Shown one piece after another: positions 10,099-31,557 of a DNA stretch of 64,000 nt. A program made the translations under genes and the position numbers. The stretch spans positions 124,001 to 188,000 of IMG/VR virus record IMGVR_UViG_3300042350_004528; one strand, 5' to 3'. A model generated the notes under the pieces. It was not told where the DNA came from. It did not search any database and was given only the letters and a program-made list of their open reading frames with translations. How positions within the stretch are numbered: position 1 is the stretch's first letter; every line of letters starts with the position of its first letter.

Positions 10099-10443
10099 TT
10101 ATTTAGTTATACCATCATGTTGCTTTACAAATAATTTGCTAGCATACATGTTAAAGATAACCATCCCAACAGAATCTTCGTATATCTTGTAAACCCCATT
10201 ATTTCGATCCATAATTAGAATTTGATTCTTTTCGTTGATCGCGATACTGGTTTCAGACATAGTTCTGATGTGCTTGAATTGGTTATTATCTTCCATTTTT
10301 TTAAACAAGGTGTTGTAGTAATAACCAACTACAAACCCAGCCCCGATAGCCATCAAAATAACTGATACGGCCCCGATTTTCTTCAAAGCATTACTAATGT
10401 ACGCTTTTACTTCTTCCATTTTGTTTTTTAATTCCATTTTCAT
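10099..10443 (-). CDS. Single-pass membrane protein
   Basis: TM segment AVSVILMAIGAGFVVGYYY. First gene of the peptidase/SLT operon. Confidence 0.7.
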   Translation of the reverse strand: MKMELKNKMEEVKAYISNALKKIGAVSVILMAIGAGFVVGYYYNTLFKKMEDNNQFKHIRTMSETSIAINEKNQILIMDRNNGVYKIYEDSVGMVIFNMYASKLFVKQHDGITK

Positions 10444-10544: not shown

Positions 10545-12686
10545 TTAACTAAGCGCCTGATTTACAGCATCAATTACTGTACCAATTTCAATGGTTTTAG
10601 TACATTCAAACATCCTTTCTGTGTTTTTGTGTTCTGGACACCATTCCCAATCACCAGGATTTAACCAGTGTCTGTTAAAACACCCAGAGCATATTGAAGG
10701 TGAATCATTAAAGACTCTAATACAATCACTAAACTCTGTATAAGGATAACTAAAACCAGAAATCATTATAGTTTTAGTACCCAGGGCCCAAGAAACCCAA
10801 CTTAAACCACTACCAACCCCAATGAATAAATCAGCGTTTAATATGTCGGTAAACCTATCTTGTATTGGATAGTCACCAGTTTTATCGATAACACCCGTTA
10901 ATGTCCCACCTAATTTAGAATCGTGCCAAGCGTCACCTAATTTTTCGTTAGTCAACATCAACACTTTATATCCAATAGAGTTTAAATAATCAATTATAGC
11001 TTGCCAGCCGCCTGGTTTATTCCAATATTTTGCGTGAGCTGACGCATGCGGTGCTATCACCGCGTATTTTTCGTTTATATTCCTCTCTTTTTTAAGAACA
11101 TCGATTATCGGTTTAACCTCAATAGGATCAACCCCCAATATGGATGATGCAGTTTCTTGTAAACTTTTTTCTCTAAAATTAATTGGATTTTTATTATAAT
11201 TTATTTTTGAGTCATCGTAATACCAACCAATTGTGTACATAGCATATAAATCGTATACTGCTTCACCAGGTTTTACAAATTTTAAATTAGGGTATGTTTT
11301 TTCGAACCAATCGTTTTTAAAAGTCGATACAACAACTTCACATTCATATTTTTTCCTAAATTCTTCGACAATTGGAAACCAAGCAAGTGTATCACCAATT
11401 GCACTGGACTCTAGCGCTACATAAACTTTTTTACCCTTTAAATCAAATAAGTGTTCTGAGAATAAAAACCCATCCCGATATACTTTTATATGCCATTTAA
11501 CGTTAAATTCTTTACTCGCTTTACACCAACAATTATTTTCTATTTTTGTGGTGTATTCGACTTTATTTGTTTCTGAATTAATAAATTCAACCGTATATTC
11601 TTCTTTATTATTACCTAATATTTCAACTTTTGGGCCATTTATAAAAGTATAAATAACTTTGTTTTCATTTATAACTTTATTTAATCGTCTTATGGGCGTT
11701 TCTTCGTAAATCCTAATTAAATTATCTTTCATGTCGTTTTTATTTTTTAATATTTCATTGTATATTTTTATTAGTTTTTTTGTTAAATTTTTAAATGAGT
11801 GAGCTTTCGCTGTCTTAAAACTCATATCGGCCATAGTTGTATAGTTGTTAATGACATAATTTAACCCATCAACAATTTGTTTTACATCACGCTCTATTCG
11901 ATACATTCCAGGTAATTCATTTCCTGGCTCAAATGTCGCGATAACGGGTAACCCACAAGCCATTGCCTCAAGTAGTGTTAAATTTGGGTGTCCAGCTTCT
12001 AGTATTGACGGATGTAAAAATATTGTATGTTTTTGGTAGGTATCTAAAAGTTGCTCTTCGTTTAAATCATATAATATTGTTAGTTTATTATATTCTTGAT
12101 TAAAACTGTTAAAAAAATTTTTGTTATTGGAAGGGCCAACAATTGTTATTGGTAAATCTAAAATTTTAGCTGCGTTAATCGCATATGAAAATCCTTTTCT
12201 ATCAAACCCTTGGTCATTGGCAAATCCATTATTTGCTACACATAACAATTTATGCCCGTAAGTCCTTTTTTGTGGGTCTGGTTTAAAAAAATCAGTATTA
12301 ACCGCATGCTCCAAATACCTCAGCTTTGGGTGATTATTAAAATAACCCAATAAAAATTTTGCTGGTACAAATGAAATTAAAGATTTATCGATAGCTTCTA
12401 AATTTTCTTTGTAAACATGAGAATCTTTTCCATAAACATATACATGGTGATCATGACAAGTAAATACATAATCAATACCTCTTTGTTTACCTTCTAGTGC
12501 TAAATTTGCAACATGTTGATGTACCACATCATAATTTTCTTTAACAACATCATTTAAATACTTTATTTCACTTTTGTGGCCAAATTCATTTGAGTTACAA
12601 TGATATTCCCATATGATTTTTTCAACCGCACCCCAACCGTTAGGTGGTATTGGAAGCAAACCAACTGTTACTTGACAAATTTTCAT
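10545..12686 (-). CDS. Fusion of GT4-like glycosyltransferase and TibC/Aah-type (BAHT) protein O-heptosyltransferase
   Basis: N-terminus PIPPNGWGAVEK...HPSILE...LTLLEAMACGLPVI (GT4). C-terminus DLKGKKVYV...AIGDTLAWFP..EEFRKK, FIGVGSGLSWVSWALG, MISGFS and Cys motif CSGC...WCPEH...FECTK, as in Fe-binding autotransporter heptosyltransferases. Confidence 0.85.
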   Translation of the reverse strand: MKICQVTVGLLPIPPNGWGAVEKIIWEYHCNSNEFGHKSEIKYLNDVVKENYDVVHQHVANLALEGKQRGIDYVFTCHDHHVYVYGKDSHVYKENLEAIDKSLISFVPAKFLLGYFNNHPKLRYLEHAVNTDFFKPDPQKRTYGHKLLCVANNGFANDQGFDRKGFSYAINAAKILDLPITIVGPSNNKNFFNSFNQEYNKLTILYDLNEEQLLDTYQKHTIFLHPSILEAGHPNLTLLEAMACGLPVIATFEPGNELPGMYRIERDVKQIVDGLNYVINNYTTMADMSFKTAKAHSFKNLTKKLIKIYNEILKNKNDMKDNLIRIYEETPIRRLNKVINENKVIYTFINGPKVEILGNNKEEYTVEFINSETNKVEYTTKIENNCWCKASKEFNVKWHIKVYRDGFLFSEHLFDLKGKKVYVALESSAIGDTLAWFPIVEEFRKKYECEVVVSTFKNDWFEKTYPNLKFVKPGEAVYDLYAMYTIGWYYDDSKINYNKNPINFREKSLQETASSILGVDPIEVKPIIDVLKKERNINEKYAVIAPHASAHAKYWNKPGGWQAIIDYLNSIGYKVLMLTNEKLGDAWHDSKLGGTLTGVIDKTGDYPIQDRFTDILNADLFIGVGSGLSWVSWALGTKTIMISGFSYPYTEFSDCIRVFNDSPSICSGCFNRHWLNPGDWEWCPEHKNTERMFECTKTIEIGTVIDAVNQALS

Positions 12687-13384
12687 TGATTGAAATATAT
12701 TTTGTTATAAATTGATTCTATTTTTCTATCCTGGCCAAAAGATCTAATGTCTAGTATCTGGGCATTTTTTAATTTTAACCAAAAATTTTCTTTCGTTTCA
12801 TTAATATAATAACCACCTTCTTTTTTAAATAAATAAAGATAAAATGGTAGTTTACACAAACTAAAATAAACAGATATATTATCAAAATTAATATGACGTT
12901 CCTTTGAGTATGCGAGTTCCCTTAATATGGAAAGCATATCCATATCATCTCTTATAATTTCGTAGTTTGGAAATATATCAGATAAACCAAACGTTGCTGA
13001 TATTTTTTTAAAATCATATTTAAAATCTAAATCTAGATTTAAAGCAAAATGATAATCAATTTTAAAATCATCATGTTGTGATTCATAAAAATTGGTTGGG
13101 TATTCAAAATGTTTTATCGGTGTAAAAAAATTGTAATACTCGTCAACTGGAGTACCTAAATAATCATTTGGGTTGAATTTATAATTGTTACCGTGGTATT
13201 TTATTAAAACAACATCTTGAGTAAATTTTTGTAGCTTTAATAAACTAACTATACTGTCTACTTTTTCAATATTGTCTGGAAAAACAAAAATAATTTTTTT
13301 ATTTTTTAATTTATATAAATGTGAGCATATTGGTAATATGTAAGCTATGTCGGTTACCGTTCCTAAAAGTGTTACTGCAATCAT
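12683..13384 (-). CDS. Hypothetical protein, possibly a degenerate GT9-like glycosyltransferase
   Basis: N-terminus LGTVTDIAYILPICSHL resembles the GT9 'GD...LP' start. Overlaps the BAHT gene by 4 nt. Confidence 0.45.
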   Translation of the reverse strand: MIAVTLLGTVTDIAYILPICSHLYKLKNKKIIFVFPDNIEKVDSIVSLLKLQKFTQDVVLIKYHGNNYKFNPNDYLGTPVDEYYNFFTPIKHFEYPTNFYESQHDDFKIDYHFALNLDLDFKYDFKKISATFGLSDIFPNYEIIRDDMDMLSILRELAYSKERHINFDNISVYFSLCKLPFYLYLFKKEGGYYINETKENFWLKLKNAQILDIRSFGQDRKIESIYNKIYFNQ

Positions 13385-13412
13385 TTTTTTTAATAGTTAA
13401 TTTAGTAAATTT

Positions 13413-15428
13413 TTATTTTAATTCTATAAATCCGTTTTTATTTAAATTATTATAAAAATAATCTGGTGTTAAAATAATTTCTTTTACCTCAATAATTTGT
13501 TCTTTTTTTTCGTCTTTTTTATCAAAAAACAAACCTTTTATTTTATACGTTTTATTTTGAAAATCTATAATTTTATACCATCTATTATTACCATTTACGT
13601 TGATAGTTTCAATAAAGTTATCATCCATGTATAAATCCAATACTCTACTGTCGGTAGCGTTATTAACACTAAACCAAATGGCAAATTTACTAGGGTTATC
13701 TTTAACCGATAGTAAAGTAAAATATTCTACTCGAGAAAAATCATACCAATAAATTGTTTTACTAACCAAATCATCAAAATCTTTTTGCTTTTCATAAAAA
13801 ACTTTATTAGATACGGGTTTTAAACCATGAAACATCATATTTTCCAAAGAATTAGTTTCAGATCCCCAATCATACATAGCTTGTGTGTATTGTTCTTCTT
13901 TAAGTATGAGTGGAAAATGGTTGATGTAAAAATCAGGTTCAATTCCCATAAACCATGTTGTAACGGTTGGCCCCTCTTGATCCCCCTCCCTTAATTGACA
14001 ATAAATTTTATAATCATTTAATTTTTTAGAAACGTAGTCTAAAAAATACCTATCTTTAATTTCATAATCATAATTTAAAAAAAATACTTTTTTAAATCCT
14101 AAATTTTTAGCTAAACAAGCCCCATTGTAATAATTTGTATAGCAAGCGGGGCCGTGGTAAATATCATTCCCATACGCCTTTAAATTTACATGTGTGTAGT
14201 ATTCAGAATAATTCCAATACGAATAAGAATAAAAGGTATGTTTAGTTAATAAATTATTTTTATCAACCACAACATAATCTGCTGTTTCTTCTAAAATCTT
14301 GGGCACGGGTATGTGAGAAGTTAATATAACTTTCCTTCCCGATTTATGGGCGGATAATATACAATTTAAGGTTACTTCAATAACCCTTTGGGTATTTGGA
14401 TATGTGGAAATAACCACTACCTCTTCACTTTCATTTAAATACTCATTATTATTATTATTATTATTATTTAATAAATTTTTAATAGTTGTGTAATTATATT
14501 CAAAGTCATCAAATTTAAGATATTTTACTTTAGAAAATTCATCAAAATAATTTTCGTAAACGGGTAAATTATAAATTAGTGTTGGCAATTCCCAAGAAAT
14601 TGCTTCACGAATAACCAAAGGCATTGTTTCTTTATCGTTTACCGTACCTTTAGATGTAAATAAAAATAAATCCATTGCGGAATAAAATTTATCAACATCG
14701 GATCTTTCACCGTGGACAATTAAATTTTTGGGGATATTATTTAATAAAGGCTCCCAATAATATTTAAAATTGTCAGCGGTGTTTCCGACAGAATGAAACA
14801 TTATTTTTTCACCCTCAAACATCCTGGCGTATTCAAAAAATTCAGCTTGGTTTTTTCTTGGTGTGAATAAACCAACATGCAATACATGTTTATATTCAGG
14901 ATCCAATCCCAACTCTTTTAAAGAATTATAGCGGTCGGGTCTTTCTTTATATTCAATTGGGTATTCAACAACCTCAGAATCTATTTTTAGATCAGACAAC
15001 ATTTTACTTTGAAATTTTGACACCAAAATAAATTTATCTGGCATAAATCTTTTTGTATTAACGTCAAACGAGGAGTCATGTGACGTTTCAAATATTTTGT
15101 ATTGTCTTTCCTTTGTGTATATTTGTTCCGCAATATTATCAGCCATAAAATATTCTGGCATCTCCTCTAAATGAACTATATCGGGATTTAATCTTTGTAT
15201 GGTTTCGATTACAAATTGCTTATCCCCACCCCACGGAATGGTTAATAAATTATCACCGATTAAATTTTTTATTCTGTTTTTTTGAACCACTAAAACACCA
15301 CCAGTCACATCATCATATTCAATAACGTATATATTATAATTGTTTTTTAATTCCTCAATCTTTTTCGTTAGATATTGGGGTAAACCACCTGTTGATAGAT
15401 GTGGTGCAATATACAATATTGTTTTCAT
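13413..15428 (-). CDS. Multi-domain glycosyltransferase (GT4-like N-terminus plus a second, GT-A-like domain)
   Basis: PHLSTGGLPQY, HVGLFTPRKNQ, DLFLFTS..ETMPLVIREA. After an Asn8 linker comes a second domain VVVISTY...VILTSH...FFLNYDY. Confidence 0.8.
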   Translation of the reverse strand: MKTILYIAPHLSTGGLPQYLTKKIEELKNNYNIYVIEYDDVTGGVLVVQKNRIKNLIGDNLLTIPWGGDKQFVIETIQRLNPDIVHLEEMPEYFMADNIAEQIYTKERQYKIFETSHDSSFDVNTKRFMPDKFILVSKFQSKMLSDLKIDSEVVEYPIEYKERPDRYNSLKELGLDPEYKHVLHVGLFTPRKNQAEFFEYARMFEGEKIMFHSVGNTADNFKYYWEPLLNNIPKNLIVHGERSDVDKFYSAMDLFLFTSKGTVNDKETMPLVIREAISWELPTLIYNLPVYENYFDEFSKVKYLKFDDFEYNYTTIKNLLNNNNNNNNEYLNESEEVVVISTYPNTQRVIEVTLNCILSAHKSGRKVILTSHIPVPKILEETADYVVVDKNNLLTKHTFYSYSYWNYSEYYTHVNLKAYGNDIYHGPACYTNYYNGACLAKNLGFKKVFFLNYDYEIKDRYFLDYVSKKLNDYKIYCQLREGDQEGPTVTTWFMGIEPDFYINHFPLILKEEQYTQAMYDWGSETNSLENMMFHGLKPVSNKVFYEKQKDFDDLVSKTIYWYDFSRVEYFTLLSVKDNPSKFAIWFSVNNATDSRVLDLYMDDNFIETINVNGNNRWYKIIDFQNKTYKIKGLFFDKKDEKKEQIIEVKEIILTPDYFYNNLNKNGFIELK
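14445..14468. repeat. (ATT)8 microsatellite encoding Asn8 inter-domain linker
   Basis: Direct observation. Confidence 0.85.
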
Positions 15429-15475
15429 ACTTTTTTTTATTTTTAATAATAAGTAAAATTTATTTAAAAATAAAC

Positions 15476-15503
15476 AAAAAAGCCTAGAATATCTAGGCTT
15501 TTT
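15476..15503 (-). terminator. Intrinsic terminator after giant fibre gene
   Basis: AAAAAGCCTAGA-ATA-TCTAGGCTTTT, giving a U run on the minus strand. Confidence 0.8.
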
Positions 15504-15606
15504 CGCGTTTAAATTCGATAATAGTTAGATTTAAATTAATCTTACCTCATCGCCTGTTAGCTCAATGCGCGGATTGAGACTGTCTTTTGTGCCAAAGCAC
15601 AATTTC

Positions 15607-18600
15607 TTATGAAATTCTATGTCCATAGAAATAAGTCATTACTGTACCACCACCACCAACAATATCAGCATCACAACTTGCGAAGGTTCCTACGATAAGT
15701 CCATTACCAGTCCCGCGAACCCTAACCTCAATTTCTTGATCTGTTCCACCATCATTATAAACTACCGTATCAATATTCACTGTTTCAGGACAATCTGTTG
15801 AGGTTATATCGTAAATTGCAACTTTTAAATATGTTGCTGTTGTTACGTTGTAAAATGCAACGCTTGTATATGCCGTCCAATTGGCAAAACCAATTTGAGC
15901 TTGAATTTCCCAGGTTTCACCTGGTTGTATAACAAATCTATAACCATTAGCCGAAACATAACCTGTTACATCGTATTGTGTGGTATCAAATTGAACTGTT
16001 GTATCAGTATTTGCGGTTAGGTTTAAATCACTCTGTGCTAATGTAATTTGGAAATAATTACCGCCACCAGCTGATACACCTGATGTACCTGAAGATCCAG
16101 CTGCGCCCGTACCACCCGAAACACCTGATGTACCAGAAGAACCAGAAGTCCCTCTCGCCCCTGATGTACCAGAAGTTCCTGATGTACCAGAAGTTCCTGA
16201 AGAACCAGAAGTCCCTCTCGCCCCTGATGTACCAGAAGTTCCTGAAGAACCAGAAGTCCCTCTCGCCCCTGATGTACCAGAAGTTCCAGAAGTTCCTGAT
16301 GTACCACCACCACCACCACCACCTATGGTCGATACGGCTCGTAATGTTAAAAAATTATTTGTGACGTTGTCTACGGCTAAAACGTGAGTTGCGGCATTAT
16401 CAATTGGCGCAGTGACCTCAGTTTTACCAGCATTACCCCCCGAAAGTATGGTTTTAAACCCACTTACCGCCCCTACGTACACCCAATCAGTTAAAGCTGT
16501 AAGATCATTCCATACGAGATATGGGGCTTTTTGGCTTATAGCTGTCGCAGTTACGTTACTTAAATCAAAACTTAATGTCACATCACTGACTAATTGGCCG
16601 CCACCCGCCAAACCAACTCCCGAAATAACCGAAACATACGTTCCAGCGGTACCGAGATTACCTGAAATTCCTGATGTGCCAGATGTTCCTGATGTGCCAG
16701 ATGTTCCAGATGTTCCTGAAGAACCAGATGTTCCTGAAGAACCTGAGCCCGTTGAAGTTCCACTTGTTCCGATAGCACTATTACCAGATGTACCAGCGCT
16801 ACCAGAAGTTCCTGATGTTCCGCTTAATGCTGATATACCATTTAGTCCACTCACACCAGAAGTTCCTGTCGTACCAGAAGTTCCTGAAGAACCTGATGTT
16901 CCAGATGTGGCACTCACACCTGAAGTACCTGACGTTCCATTTCTTCCCGATGTTCCGAAGGAACCAGAAGTTCCTGATGTAGCACCTGTACTCACACCTG
17001 AAGTACCTGACGTTCCATTTCTTCCTGAAGTTCCGAAGGAACCAGAAGTACCCGATGTAACACCCGTACTCACACCTGATGTTCCAGATGTACCATTTCT
17101 TCCCGATGTTCCGAAAGCACCTGAAGTACCCGATGTAACACCCGTACTCACACCTGAAGTACCTGATGTACCATCTCTTCCTGAAGTTCCCGATGTTCCT
17201 GAAGAACCATTTGTTCCTGATGTTGCAGAAACACCACTTGTGCCAGCAGTTCCGTTTATTCCTGAAGTTCCAGAAGTTCCTGAAGAACCTGATGTTCCAG
17301 ATGTGGCACTCACACCTGATGTTCCAGATGTACCATCTCTTCCTGAAGTTCCGAACGCACCAGAAGTTCCCGATGTAACACCTGTACTCACACCTGAAGT
17401 ACCTGACGTTCCATTTCTTCCTGAAGTTCCGAAAGCACCTGAAGTTCCTGATGTAACACCCGTACTCACACCTGAAGTACCTGACGTTCCATTTCTTCCT
17501 GAAGTTCCGAAAGCACCTGAAGTACCTGATGTAACACCCGTACTCACACCTGAAGTACCTGATGTACCATCTCTTCCTGAAGTTCCGAAGGAACCAGAAG
17601 TTCCCGATGTCGCGGATATTCCCGATGTACCAGCAGTTCCGTTTATTCCTGAAGTTCCAGCTGTTCCTGAAGAACCTGATGTTCCCGATGTGGCACTCAC
17701 ACCTGAAGTACCTGACGTTCCATTTCTTCCTGAGGTTCCTGAAGAACCTGAAGTTCCTGATGTAGCAGAAACACCACTTGTTCCTGATGTTCCTGAAGAA
17801 CCAGAAGTACCGCTTGTCGCAGATACTCCCGATGTTCCAGCTGTACCATTTATTCCTGAGGTTCCCGAAGAACCTGATGTTCCTGAAGTTGCACTTATTC
17901 CTGAAGTTCCAGCTGTTCCTGAAGAACCAGAAGTACCTGATGTAGCGGATACTCCCGAAGTTCCAGCAGTTCCATTTCTACCCGAGGTTCCCGAAGATCC
18001 GCTTGTACCTGATGTTGCTGATACACCTGAAGTACCAGAAGTTCCCGATGATCCATTAGTTCCACTTGTTGCAGAAACACCCGAAGTTCCAGCAGTTCCA
18101 TTTATTCCTGATGTTCCTGACGATCCACTTGTACCTGAAGTACCTGATGTTCCGCTCGAACCAGAAGTACCTGATGTAGCGGATACTCCCGATGTTCCAG
18201 CAGTTCCATTTCTACCCGCAGTTCCACTTGAACCAGAAGTACCTGATGTTGCAGATACCCCACTTGTACCTGAAGTCCCGCTTGAACCAGCAGTTCCGCT
18301 TGTTGCTGATATACCTGAAGTTCCAGCAGTTCCATTTATACCTGAAGTTCCTGACGATCCGCTTGTACCAGAAGTACCAGCAGTTCCACTTGAACCAGAA
18401 GTTCCTGATGTTGCTGATATACCTGAAGTCCCAGCAGTTCCATTTCTACCCGAGGTTCCTGAAGAACCTGATGTTCCTGATGTTGCAGATACACCAGAAG
18501 TACCTGATGTTCCACTCGAACCAGAAGTTCCTGATGTAGCGGATACTCCCGATGTTCCAGCGGTTCCATTTATACCTGAAGTTCCTGACGATCCACTTGT

Positions 18601-21600
18601 ACCAGAAGTACCAGCAGTTCCACTTGAACCAGAAGTTCCTGATGTTGCTGATATACCTGAAGTACCAGCAGTTCCATTTCTACCCGAGGTTCCTGAAGAA
18701 CCTGATGTTCCACTTGTTGCTGATATACCTGATGTTCCACTTGAACCACTTGTTCCTGATGTTGCAGAAACACCACTTGTACCAGCAGTTCCATTTCTTC
18801 CTGAAGTACCTGAAGATCCACTTGTACCTGATGTTGCGGAAACGCCTGAGGTTCCCGAGGTTCCCGAAGAACCTGATGTACCACTTGTTGCAGAAACACC
18901 TGAAGTTCCGTTTATTCCTGATGTTCCCGATGAACCACTCGTTCCAGCAGTTCCAGAAGTTCCCGAAGATCCACTTGTACCTGATGTTGCAGATACACCT
19001 GAAGTTCCAGCAGTTCCATTTCTACCTGAAGTTCCACTTGAACCTGATGTACCTGATGTGGCAGATACTCCACTTGTTCCTGAAGAACCTGATGTTCCAC
19101 TTGTTGCTGATACACCTGAAGTTCCAGCAGTTCCATTTATTCCTGAGGTTCCTGAAGATCCACTTGTACCTGATGTCGCAGATACCCCACTTGTTCCTGA
19201 TGTACCTGAAGAACCAGAAGTCCCCGATGTCGCAGATACACCTGAAGTTCCAGCAGTTCCATTTCTTCCCGATGTACCTGAAGAACCAGAAGTTCCTGAT
19301 GTTGCAGATACCCCACTTGTTCCTGATGTTCCACTTGAACCTGATGTTCCACTTGTTGCTGATATCCCAGAGGTACCATTTATTCCCGATGTTCCACTTG
19401 AACCTGATGTTCCACTTGTTGCTGATATCCCAGAGGTACCAGCAGTTCCTGAAGAACCACTTGTACCGCTTGTCGCAGACACACCACTTGTTCCAGCAGT
19501 TCCGTTTCTACCTGAAGTTCCTGAAGAACCAGAAGTTCCTGATGTTGCAGATATCCCTGATGTTCCCGAGGTTCCTGAAGAACCTGATGTTCCACTTGTT
19601 GCTGATATCCCAGAGGTACCAGCAGTTCCGTTTATTCCAGAGGTTCCTGAAGAACCTGATGTTCCTGATGTTGCTGACACACCACTTGTTCCCGCAGTTC
19701 CCGAAGATCCACTTGTACCTGATGTTGCAGAAACACCTGAGGTTCCAGCAGTTCCATTTCTACCCGCAGTTCCCGAAGAACCCGATGTTCCTGATGTTGC
19801 AGATATCCCTGATGTTCCCGAGGTTCCTGAAGAACCAGAAGTTCCTGATGTTGCAGAAACACCTGAAGTACCAGCAGTTCCATTTATACCTGAAGTTCCT
19901 GACGATCCACTTGTACCAGAAGTACCAGCAGTTCCTGAAGAACCTGATGTACCACTTGTTGCAGAAACACCTGAGGTTCCAGCAGTTCCATTTCTACCCG
20001 AGGTTCCTGAAGAACCTGATGTACCTGATGTTGCAGACACTCCTGATGTACCAGCAGTTCCCGAAGAACCTGATGTTCCTGATGTCGCAGATACACCTGA
20101 AGTTCCAGCAGTTCCATTTATTCCTGAAGTTCCTGAAGAACCATTTGTTCCTGATGTCGCAGAAACACCACTTGTCCCTGATGTACCTGAAGAACCAGAA
20201 GTTCCTGATGTTGCTGATATTCCTGATGTACCAGCGGTTCCATTTCTACCTGAAGTACCTGAAGAACCACTTGTTCCTGATGTTGCTGAAACTCCCGAAG
20301 TACCAGAAGTTCCAGAGGAACCTGATGTTCCTGAAGTTGCACTTATTCCTGAAGTACCAGCCGTACCGTTTATTCCCGAAGTACCTGACGATCCACTTGT
20401 ACCAGAAGTACCTGATGTTCCGCTCGAACCAGAAGTTCCTGATGTTGCGGATACACCTGAAGTTCCAGCAGTTCCGTTTATTCCAGAGGTTCCTGAAGAA
20501 CCTGATGTTCCTGATGTTGCAGATATTCCACTTGTACCAGCTGTACCTGAAGAACCTGAAGTTCCGCTTGTTGCTGATATCCCTGAAGTCCCAGCAGTTC
20601 CATTTCTACCTGAGGTACCACTTGAACCACTCGTTCCCGATGTAGCGGATACACCACTTGTCCCTGATGTACCTGAAGAACCAGCAGTTCCACTTGTTGC
20701 AGAAACACCTGAAGTTCCAGCAGTTCCATTTATTCCTGAAGTTCCTGAAGAACCTGAAGTTCCTGAAGTTGCACTTATTCCTGAAGTTCCAGCTGTTCCT
20801 GAAGAACCTGATGTTCCTGATGTGGCACTTATTCCTGAAGTTCCAGCAGTTCCATTTCTACCCGAGGTTCCTGAAGATCCAGAAGTACCTGATGTTGCAG
20901 AAACACCTGATGTACCTGAAGTACCTGAAGAACCACTTGTTCCCGATGTTGCAGAAACACCTGATGTACCAGCGGTTCCATTTATTCCTGATGTTCCCGA
21001 TGAACCAGAAGTTCCGCTTGTTGCGGATGTACCTGATGTTCCAGCAGTACCACTTGAACCAGAAGTACCTGATGTTGCAGAAACACCTGATGTACCTGAG
21101 GTTCCATTTCTACCAGCTGTTCCTGAAGAACCCGATGTCCCACTTGTAGCGGATACACCACTTGTTCCAGCTGTACCTGAAGAACCTGATGTACCTGATG
21201 TCGCAGATATACCTGATGTTCCAGCAGTTCCATTTCTACCAGCTGTTCCTGAAGAACCCGATGTCCCACTTGTAGCGGATACTCCACTTGTTCCTGATGT
21301 TCCTGAAGAACCAGAAGTTCCTGATGTTGCTGATGCACCTGAAGTTCCAGCGGTACCATTTATTCCTGAAGTTCCCGATGATCCATTTGTACCAGCCGTA
21401 CCAGAAGTGCCAGAAGATCCACTTGTTCCGCTTGTTGCGGATATACCTGATGTTCCAGCAGTTCCATTTATACCTGAAGTTCCAGAAGAACCAGAAGTTC
21501 CGCTTGTTGCAGATATTCCTGATGTTCCAGCGGTACCATTAATACCTGATGTACCAGCTGTTCCTGAAGAACCAGAAGTTCCGCTTGTTGCAGATATTCC

Positions 21601-24600
21601 TGAAGTCCCAGCAGTTCCGTTTCTACCAGAAGTACCTGAAGAACCAGAAGTACCTGATGTTGCAGAAACACCTGATGTTCCCGAGGTTCCTGAAGAACCA
21701 GAAGTACCTGATGTGGCGGATACACCTGAAGTCCCAGCAGTTCCATTTATTCCTGATGTTCCACTTGAACCTGATGTACCTGATGTCGCAGAAACACCAC
21801 TTGTTCCTGATGTTCCACTTGAACCAGAAGTACCCGATGTCGCAGACACACCTGATGTTGCTGATACCCCCGATGTACCTGATGTTCCGCTCGATCCACT
21901 TGTTCCTGATGTTGCAGAAACACCACTTGTTCCAGCTGTACCTGAAGAACCTGAAGAACCTGATGTTCCTGATGTTGCAGATATTCCACTTGTACCAGCA
22001 GTTCCATTTCTACCTGAGGTACCACTTGAACCACTCGTTCCCGATGTTGCGGATACTCCACTTGTTCCTGATGTTCCCGAAGAACCAGAAGTTCCTGATG
22101 TTGCTGAAACACCTGATGTACCAGAAGTTCCATTTATTCCTGAAGTTCCCGATGAACCACTTGTACCAGCAGTACCTGAGGTTCCTGAAGAACCAGAAGT
22201 ACCTGATGTTGCGGATATTCCTGAAGTTCCAGCAGTTCCATTTATTCCAGCTGTTCCTGAAGAACCATTTGTTCCTGATGTCGCAGATACACCTGAAGTC
22301 CCCGCAGTTCCACTTGAACCAGAAGTTCCCGATGTTGCTGATATCCCTGAAGTTCCAGCAGTTCCGTTTCTTCCTGAGGTTCCTGAAGAGCCCGATGTTC
22401 CTGATGTAGCAGAAACACCACTTGTTCCCGCAGTTCCCGAAGAACCCGATGTTCCTGAGGTTGCTGAAACACCCGATGTTCCAGCTGTACCATTTATTCC
22501 AGATGTTCCTGAAGAACCTGATGTTCCTGAAGTTGCTGATACACCCGATGTTCCACTTGTTCCCGAAGAACCTGATGTTCCTGAGGTTGCTGAAACACCC
22601 GATGTTCCAGCTGTACCATTTATTCCTGAGGTTCCTGAAGAACCTGATGTCCCACTTGTAGCGGACACACCACTTGTTCCCGCAGTTCCTGAAGAACCAG
22701 AAGTACCTGATGTTGCTGAAACACCCGATGTTCCAGCTGTACCATTTATTCCTGAAGTTCCAGAGGAACCTGATGTTCCTGAAGTTGCTGATATTCCTGA
22801 AGTACCAGCTGTTCCTGAAGAACCAGAAGTTCCGCTTGTTGCGGATATTCCTGAAGTTCCAGCAGTTCCGTTTCTTCCTGAGGTTCCTGAAGAACCAGAA
22901 GTACCTGATGTTGCCGATACTCCCGATGTTCCTGAGGTTCCTGAAGAACCTGATGTTCCTGATGTAGCAGAAACACCTGATGTACCAGCTGTACCATTTA
23001 TCCCCGAAGTTCCCGCAGTTCCCGAAGAACCTGATGTTCCTGATGTTGCAGAAACACCACTTGTTCCAGCTGTACCTGAAGAACCTGATGTTCCACTTGT
23101 TGCCGATATTCCTGATGTACCAGAAGTTCCATTTCTTCCTGAAGTACCTGAAGAACCACTTGTTCCTGATGTTGCTGAAACACCACTTGTTCCAGCTGTA
23201 CCTGAAGAACCAGATGTACCTGATGTTGCGGAAACACCTGATGTTCCAGCGGTTCCGTTTATTCCTGATGTTCCACTTGAACCAGAAGTACCTGATGTTG
23301 CAGATACCCCACTTGTACCTGAAGTCCCGCTTGAACCAGCAGTTCCGCTTGTTGCTGATATACCTGAAGTTCCAGCAGTTCCATTTCTACCTGATGTTCC
23401 ACTTGAACCCGATGTACCTGATGTTGCAGATACTCCTGAAGTTCCAGCAGTACCACTTGAACCTGATGTACCTGATGTGGCAGACACACCACTTGTACCA
23501 GCAGTTCCATTTCTTCCTGATGTTCCACTTGAACCTGATGTTCCTGATGTTGCAGACACTCCTGATGTACCTGAGGTTCCTGAAGATCCACTTGTACCTG
23601 ATGTTGCTGATATCCCCGAAGTTCCAGCAGTTCCATTTATTCCTGATGTACCTGAGGTTCCACTTGAACCCGATGTTGCAGACACACCTGATGTGCCTGA
23701 GGTTCCCGAAGAACCTGATGTACCTGATGTCGCAGATATACCTGATGTTCCAGCAGTTCCATTTATTCCTGAAGTACCTGAAGATCCGTTTGTACCTGAT
23801 GTTGCGGAAACACCTGAGGTTCCCGAGGTTCCCGAAGAACCCGATGTTCCTGATGTGGCAGACACACCACTTGTACCAGCAGTTCCATTTCTTCCCGATG
23901 TACCTGAAGTTCCGCTTGAACCAGCAGTACCGCTTGTCGCAGATACTCCACTTGTACCAGCAGTTCCGTTTATTCCTGATGTTCCAGCAGTACCACTTGA
24001 ACCTGATGTACCTGATGTTGCAGACACTCCTGATGTTCCAGCAGTACCATTTATTCCTGAAGTACCCGAAGATCCGTTTGTACCAGCAGTCCCTGAAGTC
24101 CCCGAAGATCCACTTGTACCTGATGTCGCTGATGCCCCTGAAGTTCCAGCGGTTCCGTTTATTCCTGATGTTCCACTTGAACCAGATGTTCCACTTGTTG
24201 CCGATATCCCTGATGTACCAGCGGTTCCATTTCTACCTGAAGTACCACTTGAACCTGATGTACCTGATGTTGCAGAAACACCTGATGTACCTGAAGTTCC
24301 ATTTATCCCTGATGTGCCTGAAGTACCGCTTGAACCTGATGTTCCTGATGTTGCAGACACTCCTGAAGTTCCTGATGTTCCCGAAGAACCAGAAGTTCCT
24401 GATGTTGCAGACACTCCTGAAGTTCCTGATGTTCCATTTATTCCTGATGTTCCACTTGAACCTGATGTACCTGATGTGGCAGATACTCCTGAAGTTCCCG
24501 AAGTACCTGAAGAACCAGATGTACCTGATGTTGCGGAAACACCTGATGTTCCAGCGGTTCCGTTTATTCCTGATGTTCCACTTGAACCAGATGTTCCTGA

Positions 24601-27600
24601 TGTGGCGGATACACCCGAAGTTCCCGAAGTACCTGAAGAACCAGAAGTTCCTGATGTCGCAGATACCCCACTTGTACCAGCGGTTCCATTTATTCCTGAT
24701 GTTCCACTTGAACCTGATGTTCCTGATGTGGCAGATACTCCACTTGTACCAGAGGTACCACTTGAACCCGATGTACCTGATGTTGCAGATACTCCACTTG
24801 TACCAGCAGTTCCGTTTATTCCTGAAGTACCTGAAGATCCACTTGTACCTGATGTTGCTGATATACCTGAAGTTCCAGCAGTTCCATTTCTACCAGCTGT
24901 ACCTGAAGATCCTGATGTTCCACTTGTCGCAGATACCCCACTTGTACCAGCGGTTCCATTTATTCCTGATGTTCCAGAAGAACCTGATGTTCCTGATGTG
25001 GCAGATACACCCGAAGTTCCTGAAGTTCCACTTGAACCCGATGTTCCTGATGTGGCAGACACACCACTTGTACCAGCAGTTCCGTTTATTCCTGATGTTC
25101 CAGCAGTACCACTTGAACCTGATGTACCTGATGTTGCAGACACACCACTTGTTCCAGCAGTTCCATTTCTACCAGCGGTTCCACTTGAACCATTTGTTCC
25201 AGATGTTGCAGATACCCCTGAAGTTCCTGATGTTCCGTTTATTCCCGAAGTTCCTGAAGAACCTGATGTTCCTGATGTTGCGGAAACACCTGAAGTTCCC
25301 GATGTTCCATTTCTACCTGATGTTCCCGAAGAACCTGAGGTTCCTGAAGAACCATTTGTTCCCGATGTTCCACTTATTGCTGATATACCATTTAATCCAT
25401 CAATACCCGATGTACCAGTTGAACCACTTGTTCCTGATGTTGCAGATACACCTGATGTTCCAGCACTCCCACTTCTACCTGATGTTCCCGAAGAACCTGA
25501 GGTTCCTGAAGAACCATTTGTTCCCGATGTTCCACTTATTGCTGATATACCATTTAATCCATCAATACCCGATGTACCAGTTGAACCAGAAGTTCCACTT
25601 GTCGCAGACACTCCTGATGTTCCAGCAGTACCATTTCTTCCTGAGGTTCCCGAAGAACCTGAGGTTCCACTTGTTGCAGATACTCCACTTGAACCTGATG
25701 TACCTGATGTCGCAGATACTCCCGATGTACCAGAGGTACCCGATGTTCCTGAAGAACCAGAAGTTCCAGATGTTGCAGAAACACCTGATGTTCCCGATGT
25801 TCCTGAAGAACCTGATGTTCCTGATGTGGCAGACACACCACTTGTACCAGCAGTTCCATTTATTCCTGATGTTCCCGAAGAACCAGATGTACCTGATGTT
25901 GCCGATATACCTGAAGTTCCAGCGGTACCATTTATTCCAGATGTTCCATTGGAACCACTTGTTCCCGATGTCGCAGACACACCTGAAGTCCCAGCGGTTC
26001 CATTTCTCCCCGATGTTCCACTTGAACCTGATGTTCCACTTGTAGCGGATACTCCCGATGTACCAGCAGTACCGTTTATTCCTGAAGTACCTGAAGAACC
26101 ATTTGTTCCAGATGTGGCAGATACTCCACTTGAACCAGCAGTACCGCTTGTCGCAGATACTCCACTTGTTCCCGAGGTTCCTGAAGACCCAGACGTTCCT
26201 GATGTTGCAGATACACCTGATGTTCCAGCACTCCCACTTCTACCTGATGTTCCCGAAGAACCTGATGTTCCTGATGTCGCAGACACACCTGAAGTTCCAG
26301 AGGTTCCGTTTATTCCCGATGTACCTGAAGAACCAGATGTCCCTGATGTTCCACTTATCGCTGATGTACCAGCAGTACCGTTTATTCCTGAAGTACCTGA
26401 AGAACCATTTGTTCCAGATGTGGCAGACACACCTGAAGTTCCTGATGTTCCATTTATTCCTGATGTACCTGATGAACCACTTGTACCAGCAGTTCCACTT
26501 ATCGCTGATGTACCAGCAGTACCATTTATTCCCGAAGTTCCTGATGACCCAGAAGTTCCTGATGTTGCCGATATTCCCGAAGTTCCTGATGTTCCATTTA
26601 TTCCTGATGTACCTGATGAACCACTTGTTCCTGATGTCGCAGACACACCACTTGTACCAGCAGTTCCATTTGAACCTGATGTTCCTGATGTTGCTGATAT
26701 CCCAGAAGTACCTGATATCCCAGAAGTACCTGATGAACCACTTGTACCAGCAGTTCCATTTCTTCCTGAGGTTCCGCTTGAGCCAGAAGTTCCTGAAGTT
26801 CCACTCTCACCTGAAGTTCCCGAAGAACCTGAAGTTCCTGAAGAACCACTTGTACCGCTTGAACCAGAAGTTCCCGAAGAACCTGAAGTATTCGATTCAC
26901 CTGATGTACCAGCACCACCTGATGTTCCAGCAGTACCACCTGTTCCCGAGGTTCCAGCCTGGGATGTACTTGTTCCAGATGTACCAGCACCACCTGATGT
27001 TCCAGAAGTACCACCTGTTCCCGAGGTTCCAGCCTGGGATGTACTTGTTCCAGATGTACCAGCACCACCTGATGTTCCAGCAGTACCACCTGTTCCCGAG
27101 GTTCCACTTATTGCTGATATACCATTTAATCCATCAATACCCGATGTACCAGTTGAACCAGAAGTTCCTGATGTTGCTGATATCCCCGAAGTTCCAGCAG
27201 TTCCATTTCTACCTGATGTTCCACTTGAACCAGAAGTTCCTGATGTTGCTGATATCCCTGATGTACCAGAGGTACCCGATGTTCCTGAAGAACCATTTGT
27301 TCCGCTTGTCGCCGATACCCCTGATGTTCCCGAAGAACCCGAAGTTCCAGCAGTTCCTGAAGAACCATTTGTTCCCGATGTCGCAGATATCCCACTTGTT
27401 CCCGATGTTCCATTTATTCCTGATGTACCTGAAGATCCACTTGAACCTGATGTACCTGATGTGGCAGATACACCTGATGTTCCAGCGGTTCCATTTATTC
27501 CTGAAGTCCCCGAAGATCCACTTGTTCCAGCAGTACCTGATGTACCCGAAGAACCCGATGTTCCCGAAGATCCGCTAGATCCTGAAGTCCCCGAACTTCC

Positions 27601-30600
27601 GCTTGAGCCAGAAGTACCTGATGTTCCTGAACTCCCCGAACTTCCGCTTGAGCCAGAAGTACCTGATGTTCCTGATGTTGCGGAAACACCTGATGTACCA
27701 GCGGTTCCATTTCTTCCTGAAGTTCCGCTTGAACCAGAAGTTCCAGATGTTGCAGAAACACCTGAAGTTCCATTTAATCCTGATGTTCCCGAAGAACCTG
27801 ATGTTCCCGAAGAACCTGATGTTCCCGAAGAACCTGATGTACCAGTAGTTCCTGATGTACCTGAAGAACCTGAGGTTCCAGAAGAACCTGATGTTCCCGA
27901 AGAACCTGACGTACCTGATGTCGCAGATATTCCAGAAGTACCTGAAGTTCCAGATGATCCACTTTCACCCGATGTTCCCGAGGTTCCAGACGTTGCGGAA
28001 CCACCACTCTCACCCGCTAGTCCATTAACACCCGAAGTACCTGAAGAACCTGATGTTCCTGATGTTGCGGAAATGCCTGAAGTACCACTTGTACCGTTTG
28101 AGCCTGATGTTCCAGAAGTACCTGAAGACCCAGACGTTCCCGAAGAACCACTTGTCCCATTTGTACCCGATTCACCTGAAGTACCTGAAGACCCAGACGT
28201 TCCTGAAGTTCCATTTGTTCCTGATTTACCTGAAGACCCAGACGTTCCTGAAGTTCCACTTTCGCCAGAAGTTCCTGAAGTTCCATTTGTTCCTGATTCA
28301 CCTGATGTTCCCGAAGAACCACTTGTACCACTTGTTCCAGAAGAACCATTTGTACCATTTGTTCCAGATGTTCCACTTTCACCAGAAGTTCCCGAAGTTC
28401 CACTTTCACCCGAAGTTCCTGAAGAACCTGATGTACCTGATGTTGCAGATATCCCTGATGTTCCCGAAGAACCATTTGTACCACTTTCACCTGAACTTCC
28501 ACTTTCACCCGAACTTCCACTTGTGCCAGAAGTTCCCGAACTTCCACTTGAACCTGATGTACCTGAACTTCCACTTTCACCCGAAGTACCGTTTGTACCA
28601 CCCTCACCCGAAGTTCCATTTGTTCCTGAAGTTCCCGAAGTTCCACTTATTGCTGATATACCATTTAATCCATCAATACCCGATGTACCAGTTGAACCAG
28701 AAGTTCCTGATGTTGCTGATATACCTGAAGTTCCAGCAGTTCCATTTATTCCCGATGTTCCACTTGAACCAGAAGTTCCCGAAGAACCATTTGTACCAGA
28801 AGTTCCCGAAGAACCATTTGTACCACTTTCACCTGAAGTACCGTTTGTACCCGACTCACCAGATGTCCCTGATGTTCCCGATGTACCTGAAGAACCAGAT
28901 GTTCCTGATGTTCCTGAAGAACCATTTGTACCGCTCTCACCTGAACTTCCGCTTGAACCAGAAGAACCTGATGTTCCACTTGAGCCAGAAGAACCTGATG
29001 TTCCACTTGAGCCAAATGTTCCTGAGGTTCCAGAAGAACCATTTGTACCACTCTCACCTGAACTTCCACTCTCACCCGAAGTTCCTGAGGTTCCAGAAGA
29101 ACCTGATGTTCCACTTGAACCAGAAGTACCCGATGTTCCCGAAGAACCATTTGTACCACTTTCACCTGAAGTACCACTTTCACCCGAACTTCCACTTGAA
29201 CCAGAAGTACCTGATGTTCCTGAAGAACCAGAAGTACCTGATGTTCCTGAAGTACCGTTTGTACCACTTTCACCTGAAGTACCACTTTCACCCGATGTTC
29301 CTGAGGTTCCTGATGTACCTGAGGAACCACTTGTTCCAGAAGTTCCCGATGTTCCCGAAGAACCATTTGTACCACTTTCACCTGAAGTACCACTTTCACC
29401 TGAAGAACCCGAAGTTCCTGATGTACCTGAGGAACCACTTGTACCTGAAGTTCCAGATGATCCACTTTCACCCGATGTGCCTGAAGTTCCAGAAGTTGCG
29501 GAACCACCACTCTCACCCGCTAGTCCATTAACACCCGAAGTTCCTGAAGAACCAGAAGTTCCCGAAGAACCCGATGTCCCTGAAGTTGCTGAAAAACCTG
29601 AAGTACCGTTTGTACCCGACTCACCCGAAGTTCCCGAAGTTCCCGAAGAACCTGATGTTCCCGATGTTCCCGAAGAACCCGATGTCCCTGAAGTTGCTGA
29701 AAAACCTGAAGTACCATTTGTGCCCGACTCACCCGAAGTTCCTGAAGTTCCTGAAGAACCCGATGTCCCAGAAGTTCCTGAAGAACCCGATGTTCCTGAA
29801 GTTCCACTTTCACCTGAAGTACCGTTTGTACCCGACTCACCCGATGTTCCCGATGTTCCCGATGTACCTGAGGAACCACTTGTTCCCGAAGAACCCGAAG
29901 AACCTGATGTTCCTGAAGTTCCATTTGAACCTGATGTTCCTGAAGTTCCACTTTCACCCGAAGTTCCACTTGAGCCAGAAGTACCTGAGGAACCACTTGT
30001 TCCCGAAGAACCTGAAGAACCTGATGTACCTGATGTTCCTGAAGAACCATTTGTACCACTCTCACCTGAAGTACCACTCTCACCCGAAGAACCTGATGTT
30101 CCTGATGTTCCAGATGATCCACTTGTACCTGATGTTCCTGATGTTCCCGAAGAACCATTTGTCCCTGACTCACCTGAAGTACCGTTTGTTCCCGACTCAC
30201 CAGATGTCCCCGATGTCCCCGATGTACCTGATGAACCAGAAGTTCCCGAAGAACCAGATGTCCCTGATGTTCCGTTTGTTCCAGATTCACCATTTGTACC
30301 ATTTTCACCAGACGTTCCTGAAGTTCCTGAAGTTCCGCTTGTTCCTGATGTTCCTGAAGAACCAGAAGTACCTGATGTTCCGTTTGTTCCAGATTCACCA
30401 TTTGTACCATTTTCACCAGACGTTCCTGAAGTTCCTGAAGTTCCGCTTGTTCCTGATGTTCCTGAAGAACCAGACGTTCCTGAAGTTCCTGAAGTTCCGC
30501 TTGTTCCAGATTCACCATTTGTACCATTTTCACCCGAAGTTCCTGAAGAACCAGAAGTTCCCGAAGAACCAGAAGTTCCCGAAGTTCCACTTGTACCCGA

Positions 30601-31557
30601 TGTACCAGACGTACCGTTTGTCCCACTTTCACCCGATGTTCCTGATGTTCCTGTTGTCCCCGATGTTCCTGATGTGCCAGATGTGCTTGGCAACACCATA
30701 TATTTGTCAATTCTTTTTGCTACGATTATAACAGAGGGCGCCGCTGGATAATTAACCCCAGCCCCTAAAGCTGTTATTTGTACATGTTGATTTGTGGATA
30801 AAAATACAAACTCAACACAATCATTAGCTTGTAAATTAAATTGATATGCAACAAATGGTAATTGATATGCGCCATTTCCGCTTAATGTTATAGTTGATGT
30901 TGTCCTGGGCTCGTCATTGCCATTAATTCTTGCCCAAATTATAATATCAGTACCGTTTGCATTTGATGCGGCTTCAATTTGAGCTGAATATCCTATTTCA
31001 TAAACACCAGCATTATCTACGGTAATTTGTGAATTATTTTGTACACTAATGCCATTTGCAATTTCGGTTGTATTATATTCCCAAACGGTTGGTATACTTG
31101 AACCACTGACTACTTGTGTGGTTGAATCACTAAACGACCCATAATAATTATCTCCAGTCCACGAAGTACCAGATGAACCTGCTGTTCCCGAAGTACCAGT
31201 AGTTCCTGATGTACCTGAAGAACCAGAAGTTCCCGACTCACCAGATGTCCCCGATGTACCTGAGTAACCAGATGTTCCTGAGGTACTAGCGGCGGAATAT
31301 GTGAATTGACCCGTTAGCGGATCAAATGTTACGACATATTGCGGATTTAATTCTTGAGTTAATTCCTGATTAACCCAATTACTACCATTATAAACTAAAA
31401 TACTACCAGCTGTTGCGCCAGTTGTTATTATTACATCAGTTAGGTCATCCAGACCTAAGTTCTCAATTGCATTTTTTAGATTATCAAAATTCGCGTCAAG
31501 TTCGCCGAATGTTAAAGGTCTACCTAGTGCGCATCTTAAATATATTGTAACCGCCAT
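15607..31557 (-). CDS. Giant (5316 aa) Gly-X-Y Ser/Thr-rich collagen-like fibre protein with C1q/BclA-like globular domains
   Basis: N-terminus [21 protein letters not shown] resembles phage fibre attachment segments. Beta-sandwich at about aa 135-285 (YYGSF...[11 protein letters not shown]). About 4700 aa of period-3 [19 protein letters not shown]-terminal beta domain (TTVQFDT..YD...RFVIQ). TATTTAT upstream. Confidence 0.85.
16660..30690 (-). repeat. About 14-kb period-9-nt coding repeat (Gly-X-Y triplets) with synonymous variation
   Basis: Plus strand is built of units such as GTTCCTGAT, GTTCCTGAA, GAACCAGAA, GTACCTGAT. Confidence 0.95.

Follow-up and report, generated by a model that had tools for sequence, protein, structure and literature searches.

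Why would a phage encode several glycosyltransferases (GTs) directly behind the gene for an enormous fibre rich in serine and threonine? The question is raised by a 64,000-nucleotide (nt) stretch of DNA (hereafter the window), which covers positions 124,001 to 188,000 of the 298,833-bp IMG/VR contig IMGVR_UViG_3300042350_004528. Here, a gene for a collagen-like fibre of 5316 amino acids (aa) is followed by three genes for enzymes or enzyme-like proteins, one of which belongs to the BAHT family of TibC/Aah-type heptosyltransferases. The locus is interpreted as a phage-encoded post-translational modification (glycosylation) cassette for a virion fibre, with a probability of roughly 0.68. An initial annotation of this DNA had likewise proposed that the phage glycosylates its own fibre, and the proposal is now supported by the intact residues of the BAHT domain, by the co-occurrence of such enzymes with collagen-type repeats and by the way in which acceptor type tracks enzyme phylogeny.

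A triplet-repeat fibre and its adjacent glycosyltransferase genes

Three co-oriented genes directly follow the giant fibre gene, as the initial annotation had described, and occupy the open reading frames (ORFs) 13413-15428, 12683-13384 and 10545-12686, all on the minus strand. The fibre gene is separated from the 671-aa gene by 178 nt and the latter from the 233-aa gene by 28 nt, while the 233-aa and 713-aa genes overlap by 4 nt. The principal features are listed below by window position; handles beginning with L denote related loci, among which L130 is a 307-kb relative.

15607..31557, minus strand: gene for the giant collagen-like fibre of 5316 aa, proposed to be the acceptor of the glycans (ORF, composition and triplet register)
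31279..31557, minus strand: fibre N-terminal non-repeat domain, aa 1-93 (no family match)
30679..31161, minus strand: globular insert, aa 133-293, preceded by a short collagen run of 13 triplets (weakly similar to the BclA C-terminal domain)
16636..30678, minus strand: main G-T-S / G-S-S / A-T-S triplet array, aa 294-4974, ~1560 triplets (triplet composition)
15610..16323, minus strand: terminal collagen run (aa 5079-5168) and C-terminal globular domain (aa 5169-5316) (PF01391 match; domain also in L130)
13413..15428, minus strand: 671-aa glycosyltransferase in which a poly-Asn linker joins a GT4 domain (aa 1-~325) to a GT-A-fold domain and a beta-sandwich (aa 336-671) (Pfam GT4 and structure model)
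12683..13384, minus strand: 233-aa protein with a putative truncated GT9/TibC-like fold, lineage-restricted (structure model)
11727..12686, minus strand: GT4 domain, aa 1-~320 of the 713-aa protein (PF00534, E 9e-11)
10557..11663, minus strand: BAHT (TibC/Aah-type) domain, aa 342-710 of the 713-aa protein (TIGR04414 and TibC alignment)

The BAHT domain of the 713-aa protein had been recognized from the motifs GDTLAWFP, GLSWVSWA and CSGC...WCPEH...FECTK, all of which are present, and comparison with established models bears out the assignment. TIGR04414 scores 304.9 bits against a cutoff of 200, with residues 342-710 covering profile positions 10-373 of 374, and the TibC structure (PDB 4RAP) is matched at E 1.3e-58 over TibC residues 23-384, an alignment that runs through the N-terminal flattened beta-barrel from residue 23 onward. 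The corresponding family for this barrel, PF21129 TibC_1st, is detected below cutoff in the orthologues of Microcystis phage Mel-JY01 and L056. In TibC, Asp-110 acts as the catalytic base, Thr-226 and Lys-230 contact the beta-phosphate, Arg-286 contacts adenine and sets ADP specificity, and Trp-305 contacts the sugar O4 (PMC4358343). These residues align with D432, S549 (a conservative change) and K553, R611, and W630 of the window enzyme, respectively, and the four cysteines TibC Cys-339/342/358/370 align with C666/669/683/695, a predicted iron finger. The conserved ligand residues support an ADP-activated donor, and the donor is therefore likely ADP-linked; heptose serves as an unproven default guess for the transferred sugar.

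The BAHT domain is presumed from its sequence to be the priming O-glycosyltransferase, and the GT4 domain fused to it is presumed to be a glycan extender. Besides the window, this fusion occurs in the 735-kb phage LR756501, Mel-JY01 and L130, and the GT4 part is a separate adjacent gene of ~315 aa in L060, L056, L019 and L084. PHROGs contains no family for the BAHT domain. The two GT4-like domains of the initial annotation are both recovered with PF00534 (cutoff 26.4 bits), one at residues 162-256 of the 713-aa protein (42.0 bits) and the other at residues 170-299 of the 671-aa protein (43.7 bits).

The architecture of the 671-aa protein is common to 388 homologues, with orthologues in LR756501, L060, L056 and L084. 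Its C-terminal half has no match to any sequence family by hidden Markov model (HMM) search; the GT-A-like domain predicted there earlier emerges from an AlphaFold model with a predicted local distance difference test (pLDDT) score of 90, for which Foldseek returns GT-A folds at probability 1.0. The matches include glycogenin, LARGE1, the xyloside xylosyltransferase XXYLT1 and GfsA (E ~1e-5, TM 0.35-0.49). Two aspartates of this half, 389 and 454 (contexts DYVVVD and NYDYE), are invariant, and there is no clean DxD motif. The 233-aa protein had been described as degenerate GT9-like. This description probably holds at the level of the fold, as its model (pLDDT 70, of moderate confidence) best matches TibC and GT9 enzymes (TibC 4RAP, E 1.4e-3, TMq 0.46; GT9 3TOV, TMq 0.55; WaaC, TMq 0.52), but it finds no counterpart at the sequence level, where Pfam, NCBIfam and PHROG searches gave no match and hhalign against the BAHT profile gave 1.7% probability. 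The last 54 residues of the model have pLDDT <50, and the protein is ~100 residues short of a full GT-B enzyme. It has 17 homologues, is present in L130 and is absent from L060 and LR756501; the model suggests a truncated GT9-like accessory protein.

The fibre contains 1581 Ser and 1074 Thr residues, and the resulting 2655 agree with the earlier estimate of well over 2000; Gly accounts for 1497 residues and Pro for 13. The G-T-S and G-S-S triplets that had been noted are indeed dominant, with GTS, GSS and ATS representing 41%, 16% and 10% of the triplets in two long in-register runs. The X position is Thr in 62% and Ser in 17% of triplets, and the Y position is Ser in 81%. Gly or Ala recurs at every third residue across 4764 aa, with uninterrupted runs of 1212 and 3114 aa; Ala replaces Gly in 10.6% of first positions, and the strict-Gly runs add up to 3516 aa, with a maximum length of 327 aa. 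A DNA pattern of four consecutive G-[S/T]-[S/T] triplets matches 186 times in the window, always within the fibre gene, and never in 100 shuffles, and the window contains no further Gly-X-Y (GXY) run and no other ORF rich in Ser/Thr. PF01391 Collagen recognizes the C-terminal fragment of the fibre at 32.4 bits (gathering score 27.2) and the N-terminal fragment at 25.6 bits, below the cutoff, whereas the globular insert matches PF18573 BclA_C at E 9.6e-4 with 19.5 bits, below the cutoff of 38. Known stabilizers of the collagen helix are scarce in this chain, which has only the 13 Pro residues, zero KGE or KGD triplets and 3% charged residues. Collagen rises by ~0.286 nm per residue, so that 4764 residues, if fully helical, would extend over ~1.36 micrometres. 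The N-terminal domain is presumed to be the virion-attachment end, and the C-terminal globular domain is presumed to be a trimerisation nucleus or the distal tip.

At the DNA level, the fibre gene repeats imperfectly: the periods are 126 and 252 nt and the matches 72-85%, which makes it unlikely that the length of the gene is a simple assembly artefact. The coding strand is confirmed by the non-repeat N- and C-terminal domains and by a homologous C-terminal domain in L130, seen on the strand co-oriented with the GT genes when the two translations are set side by side. An opposite-strand ORF (16412-30751, 4779 aa) that reads 'VPAVPE...' was rejected as a mirror-frame artefact, and so was a 5570-aa minus-strand gene call over the repeat array of L130 with the same reading. 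The latter is a public gene call (L130:1-5246) and sits on the wrong strand; because both strands stay open, automated calls of GXY-repeat genes are unreliable. PHROG 'tail fiber' matches to the fibre ends come from repeat segments only and therefore do not decide between a tail fibre and a head fibre. S74-type self-cleaving trimer-chaperone segments are typical of phage tail fibres, and the end of the L060 fibre resembles one in a reading of its translation.

Pairing of BAHT enzymes with collagen-type repeats

At least 546 loci in IMG/VR encode BAHT relatives, of which the 25 retained loci with full 10-kb flanks were counted; these and the following co-occurrence counts are DNA pattern searches rather than full annotations of the loci. 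The initial annotation had expected BAHT genes to accompany GTS-repeat genes. A collagen-type repeat gene lies near the BAHT gene in all 25 loci, and the pairing with collagen repeats thus stands; Ser/Thr richness is not universal, however, because Gly-Ser/Thr repeats are found in 22 loci and the other three carry Pro/Gln-rich GXY collagen fibres. A reverse search with the C-terminal domain of the fibre returned solely the contig of the window.

Among 50,697 GenBank phage records, four contain a BAHT homologue. In Mel-JY01, the BAHT domain forms the C-terminus of a 1226-aa GT4-containing protein, and a Gly-Ser/Thr repeat ORF lies just upstream. A 'cytidylyltransferase-like' neighbour in this phage was considered as a clue to the donor and set aside, as it is a marginal PF01467 match with no NCBIfam match and is uninformative in this respect. 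In LR756501, a GTS/GSS collagen-like fibre adjoins orthologues of the 671-aa and 713-aa proteins, the latter being 42% identical and colinear over its full length. The fibre gene lies upstream and co-oriented in the window, L060 and L019, downstream and convergent in L024 and others, and divergent in LR756501, and the adjacency of enzyme and fibre thus survives gene rearrangement. Fibres in independent contigs are 1632, 1911 and 2718 aa long, and the L130 fibre ORF can be read for at least 2347 aa, up to the edge of the locus.

The cassettes of Pro/Gln-type fibres have a distinct composition. That of L056 adds a GT2-methyltransferase, a DUF6445 protein and a PF13640 2-oxoglutarate (2OG)-Fe(II) oxygenase of the prolyl-hydroxylase type. 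Sister cassettes of this type occur in L017, L018, L056 and L071 (for example, L056:4526-7014), and the HxD...H triad of the oxygenase is intact. The oxygenase motif was detected in exactly four loci, none of which shows the Ser/Thr pattern (a direct reading of three of them, all but L018, identified Pro/Gln fibres), and in 0 of the 38 loci that possess this pattern. Judged by sequence, such cassettes look like a phage collagen hydroxylation module. Cassette content therefore appears to follow fibre chemistry, as would be expected if the enzymes act on the fibre.

The association extends to cellular genomes. A scan of one genome per prokaryotic species yielded 46 BAHT loci, 19 of which contain GXY repeats in their flanks, often directly adjacent to the enzyme gene. 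On the chromosome of Methylobacter luteus (L085:8923-11125), a 287-aa signal-peptide protein with GTAGTSG repeats is encoded immediately upstream of a BAHT that is 48% identical to that of the window; the pair is flanked by housekeeping-type ORFs, read as queA/mfd-like on one side and glcE/glcF/miaB-like on the other. On an Arenicellales chromosome (L094:9965-12586), the BAHT gene is followed by genes for two lipoproteins with GSS, GTA and GTS repeats. The family name would designate both enzymes as autotransporter heptosyltransferases, yet no autotransporter is encoded beside them.

A maximum-likelihood tree of 69 BAHT domains is split into two clades with 100% support. The autotransporter-linked clade comprises sequences from Burkholderiales, Acetobacter, Acidaminococcaceae and Lentisphaerota, with no collagen nearby in 16 of 17 cases; an AIDA/pertactin autotransporter lies beside the Paraburkholderia enzyme and an AIDA-repeat protein beside that of Victivallis, and none was found beside the Acetobacter enzyme. 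All phage sequences fall in the collagen-linked clade, 41 of whose 52 members have collagen nearby; the exceptions are mostly located on short contigs. AIDA or autotransporter neighbours occur only in the former clade, and the window contains no autotransporter, the neighbour of its BAHT being the collagen-like fibre. When only cellular loci are considered, collagen is nearby in 17 of 26 members of the collagen-linked clade versus 1 of 17 in the other (Fisher p = 1e-4, a value that is only indicative because the loci are not phylogenetically independent). The type of neighbouring acceptor tracks BAHT phylogeny.

Proposed glycosylation of the fibre and competing explanations

Late in infection, the phage can produce the 5316-aa chain, whose central ~4700 residues consist of Gly(Ala)-Thr/Ser-Ser triplets, and, from the three genes just downstream, cytoplasmic proteins that are enzymes or resemble them. 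In the proposed mechanism, priming would take place in the cytoplasm, where the BAHT domain of the 713-aa protein would transfer an ADP-activated sugar to Ser/Thr hydroxyls of the repeats. This primer would be extended into a short glycan by three further domains, namely the GT4 domain fused to the BAHT and, in the 671-aa protein, GT4 and GT-A. Three chains would then zip up into a collagen-type triple helix, with nucleation at the C-terminal globular domain. Dense O-glycans are the likely stabilizer of such a helix because the fibre is nearly devoid of Pro and lacks Lys-Gly-Glu/Asp salt bridges; they may also shield the fibre and confer adhesiveness. Glycosylated Thr is known to replace hydroxyproline in some collagens, and (Gly-Pro-Thr)10 folds only if it is galactosylated (PMC11923368). 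The cassettes of Pro/Gln fibres, with their prolyl-hydroxylase-type oxygenase, would fit a toolbox matched to fibre chemistry. A broader proposal, with about even odds, is that a large BAHT clade consists of dedicated O-glycosyltransferases for collagen-type triplet repeats, to which phages add GT4/GT-A extenders, and an oxygenase for Pro-rich fibres, producing glycan-stabilized fibres up to a micrometre in length.

Several points weigh against the reading as a glycosylation cassette. Glycosylation of the fibre is something that we infer from gene context, and TibC itself acts on beta-helix repeats, a very different acceptor structure. TibC Pro-300 and AAH Ser-294 contact the heptose O6/O7 and define a stereoselectivity position (PMC4358343). 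The window enzyme has Gly625 there, neither Pro nor Ser, and Gly is found in 42 of 52 members of the collagen-linked clade versus Ser in 16 of 17 members of the other. The thumb region, which TibC needs for its dodecamer, has a fixed length of 27 aa in the autotransporter-linked clade and is variable (17-30 aa; 29 in the window) in the collagen-linked clade. No heptose-pathway genes (GmhA, HldE or GmhB type) were detected by Pfam, NCBIfam and PHROG scans of ~40 of the 56 window ORFs, namely the larger ones. In the huge phage LR756504, the BAHT stands alone and lacks a collagen gene within 10 kb, and adjacency in viruses is partly inherited synteny, as the enzymes are 56-69% identical within one clade. 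The exact length of the fibre depends on how 14 kb of repeats were assembled from metagenomic data, and a canonical triple helix is uncertain given the 10.6% Ala-for-Gly substitutions and the absence of Pro and charge.

Four rival explanations need to be considered. The GTs might remodel the host envelope (lipopolysaccharide, capsule or another surface glycan), for example to block superinfection, with their adjacency to the fibre reflecting a shared variable host-interaction region. This is the standard reading of GT clusters near tail-fibre genes in pelagimyophages (PMC7029224), and it agrees with the frequent role of GT4 and GT-A enzymes in building polysaccharides and with the placement of the GT4 part among auxiliary metabolic genes in PHROGs. 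It is nonetheless very unlikely here, since characterized BAHTs are protein O-glycosyltransferases (PMC4358343), the bare pair of enzyme and repeat protein persists in bacterial chromosomes without phage genes, acceptor type tracks enzyme phylogeny, and the hydroxylase accompanies Pro-rich fibres, with no Ser/Thr-pattern locus containing it. A role in DNA glycosylation was rejected, as the enzymes are unrelated to phage DNA glucosyltransferases and are located in the structural module. Alternatively, the BAHT could modify another phage or host protein and leave the giant fibre as an unmodified structural protein, a scenario that the collagen-free locus of LR756504 and the few Ser/Thr sites of Pro/Gln-type fibres would favour. 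The lack of any other Ser/Thr-rich or repeat ORF in the window and the position of repeat proteins as the nearest neighbours of the enzyme in Methylobacter and Arenicellales render it quite unlikely.

The remaining two explanations concern the fibre itself. Its length could be an artefact of assembling repeated DNA, the true gene being much shorter, as might be feared when 14 kb of a metagenomic contig consist of repeats with a 126/252-nt period. The repeats are just 72-85% identical, however, and reads would mostly be placeable for this reason; moreover, the independent contigs already mentioned encode fibres of 1632 to 2718 aa, and L130 combines a fibre ORF of at least 2347 aa with a 5570-aa opposite-strand call over the same repeats, all of which makes such an artefact unlikely. 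It is also conceivable, although rather unlikely, that the fibre is glycosylated and forms a mucin-like, disordered Ser/Thr brush stiffened by dense O-glycans instead of a triple helix. The absent Pro, the low charge and the Ala residues at first positions would all destabilize a triple helix, and a content of ~50% Ser/Thr resembles mucin domains; on the other hand, a strict three-residue register over 1212 and 3114 residues is unnecessary for a disordered brush, sister phages carry classical Pro-rich GXY collagens and fibres that seem to have S74-type chaperones at homologous positions, and the terminal segment exceeds the Pfam Collagen cutoff.

Genomic setting and relation to known systems

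The window belongs to a large myovirus-like, T4-like phage, as judged by the genes at 545-8660, which specify a T4-type portal (PF07230), a prohead protease and a gp23-type capsid protein; the G+C content is ~32%. In GenBank, the capsid protein has its closest relatives in Microcystis phage Mel-JY01 and in huge uncultured phages, at an identity of only ~33%. A related 17-kb contig with 33% G+C, L084 (NZ_JABDKL010000107.1), is a phage fragment that carries the same cassette together with tail genes in a Winogradskyella metagenome-assembled genome. Its binning gives a weak hint of a Flavobacteriaceae host, the only such hint towards the Bacteroidota considered in the initial annotation, and its presence there may alternatively be a binning artefact.

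The minus-strand block containing the cassette encodes, in order, a ClpB-like AAA+ protein, the giant fibre, the 671-aa, 233-aa and 713-aa proteins, a 114-aa ORF, an SLT lysozyme and an M42-like peptidase. Two further features of this block are the following.

15474..15506, minus strand: strong terminator-like hairpin with a 15-bp stem and a T-run, between the fibre gene and the GT genes (consensus match only)
10099..10443, minus strand: 114-aa ORF that travels with the cassette in close relatives (position kept in L130 and L131)

The 114-aa ORF has no Pfam, NCBIfam or PHROG family match; with the SLT lytic transglycosylase and the M42-like peptidase it occupies 8718-10443 (minus strand) after the cassette, a position kept in L130 and L131. 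The ClpB/Hsp104-like double-AAA+ protein (31608-34064, minus strand, 818 aa) is encoded 50 nt upstream of the fibre gene and matches TIGR03346 at 857 bits, below the equivalog cutoff, as well as PHROG 4871. It could assist in handling the 5316-aa low-complexity chain; the gene was rejected as a member of the cassette because no such gene precedes that of the fibre in L019. A 561-aa protein with two concanavalin-A-like lectin (Laminin_G_3) domains (34640-36325, plus strand), encoded divergently from the fibre block, matches a PHROG of virion structural proteins and may be a carbohydrate-binding virion component.

Other plus-strand genes of the window include a ThyA-family protein with ~80 residues beyond the Pfam model (36374-37411) and, nearby, a dNMP kinase (44354-44923), which may belong to a modified-nucleotide pathway as in T4-like phages. 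A 281-aa class II aminoacyl-tRNA-synthetase catalytic core (PF00152; 55863-56708) leaves no room for an anticodon-binding domain and is reminiscent of AsnA/EpmA-type paralogues, and a 618-aa protein (57451-59307) has a NUDIX hydrolase domain in addition to a ParB N-terminal domain that scores below cutoff.

If the locus is a glycosylation cassette for a virion fibre, the BAHT family would gain a second class of acceptors, namely collagen-type repeats, and a role outside pathogen adhesins; genome pipelines currently assign the name 'autotransporter strand-loop-strand O-heptosyltransferase' to such enzymes even in the absence of an autotransporter. The at least 546 IMG/VR loci, representing a large group of uncultured aquatic phages, would then join the few known cases of virion glycosylation. 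In such a system, glycosylated Ser/Thr would stand in for hydroxyproline, making it the equivalent, in viruses and bacteria, of collagen post-translational modification, and it offers a possible explanation for the folding of proline-free, uncharged Gly-Thr-Ser collagens, which are common in prokaryotes and viruses. The two-gene bacterial pairs represent a simple experimental system, and the apparent switch between hydroxylase-containing and hydroxylase-free cassettes constitutes a natural experiment in collagen stabilization. Three elements are already known, namely the BAHT enzymes themselves, collagen-like glycoproteins such as BclA, and mycobacteriophages with glycosylated virions. A literature search for papers linking BAHTs to collagen repeats or phages found no relevant paper, and a BAHT clade tied to collagen repeats and its use by phages were described in no paper found.

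The closest known counterparts of the window enzyme are the BAHTs TibC and AAH (TIGR04414; PDB 4RAP and 4RB4), with which it shares the family, the catalytic Asp, the phosphate and adenine contacts, the O4 Trp and the four-Cys finger, and likewise a gene position adjoining a highly repetitive, Ser/Thr-bearing secreted or structural protein. The acceptor of TibC/AAH is an AIDA-type beta-helix autotransporter, whereas the neighbour here is a collagen-type triplet array. The window enzyme also differs in belonging to a separate, well-supported clade, in being phage-encoded and fused to GT4, in having Gly at the O6/O7 position and in the varying thumb length of its clade.

BclA of the Bacillus exosporium possesses a collagen-like Gly-X-Thr region with O-linked oligosaccharides and a C1q-like C-terminal domain, and it forms hair-like filaments on the particle surface. 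The enzymes that modify this short, Pro-rich protein with its GPT triplets are unrelated and of the rhamnosyl type. The fibre of the window resembles it in its collagen-like region and its weak BclA_C-like domain; unlike BclA, it is essentially Pro-free, comprises ~1560 triplets and has a BAHT as the presumed priming enzyme. In mycobacteriophages, GTs encoded next to structural genes reportedly O-glycosylate virion proteins (Freeman et al. in 2023, cited in PMC12801897); the modified proteins are said to be capsid and tail-tube subunits, glycosylated at C-terminal sites by other GT families, with neither a collagen-like fibre nor a BAHT involved.

Collagen modification in animals and giant viruses, which employs prolyl and lysyl hydroxylases together with collagen GTs, is comparable in that modification of GXY repeats stabilizes the triple helix, and the Pro/Gln-type sister cassettes carry an oxygenase of the prolyl 4-hydroxylase type, dependent on 2OG, beside their GTs. 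A further parallel is the cuticle collagen of Riftia, in which galactosyl-Thr takes the place of hydroxyproline (PMC11923368). The enzymes are unrelated, however, and in the phage system modification would take place in the cytoplasm of the infected bacterium, with the sugar attached directly to Ser/Thr rather than to hydroxylysine.

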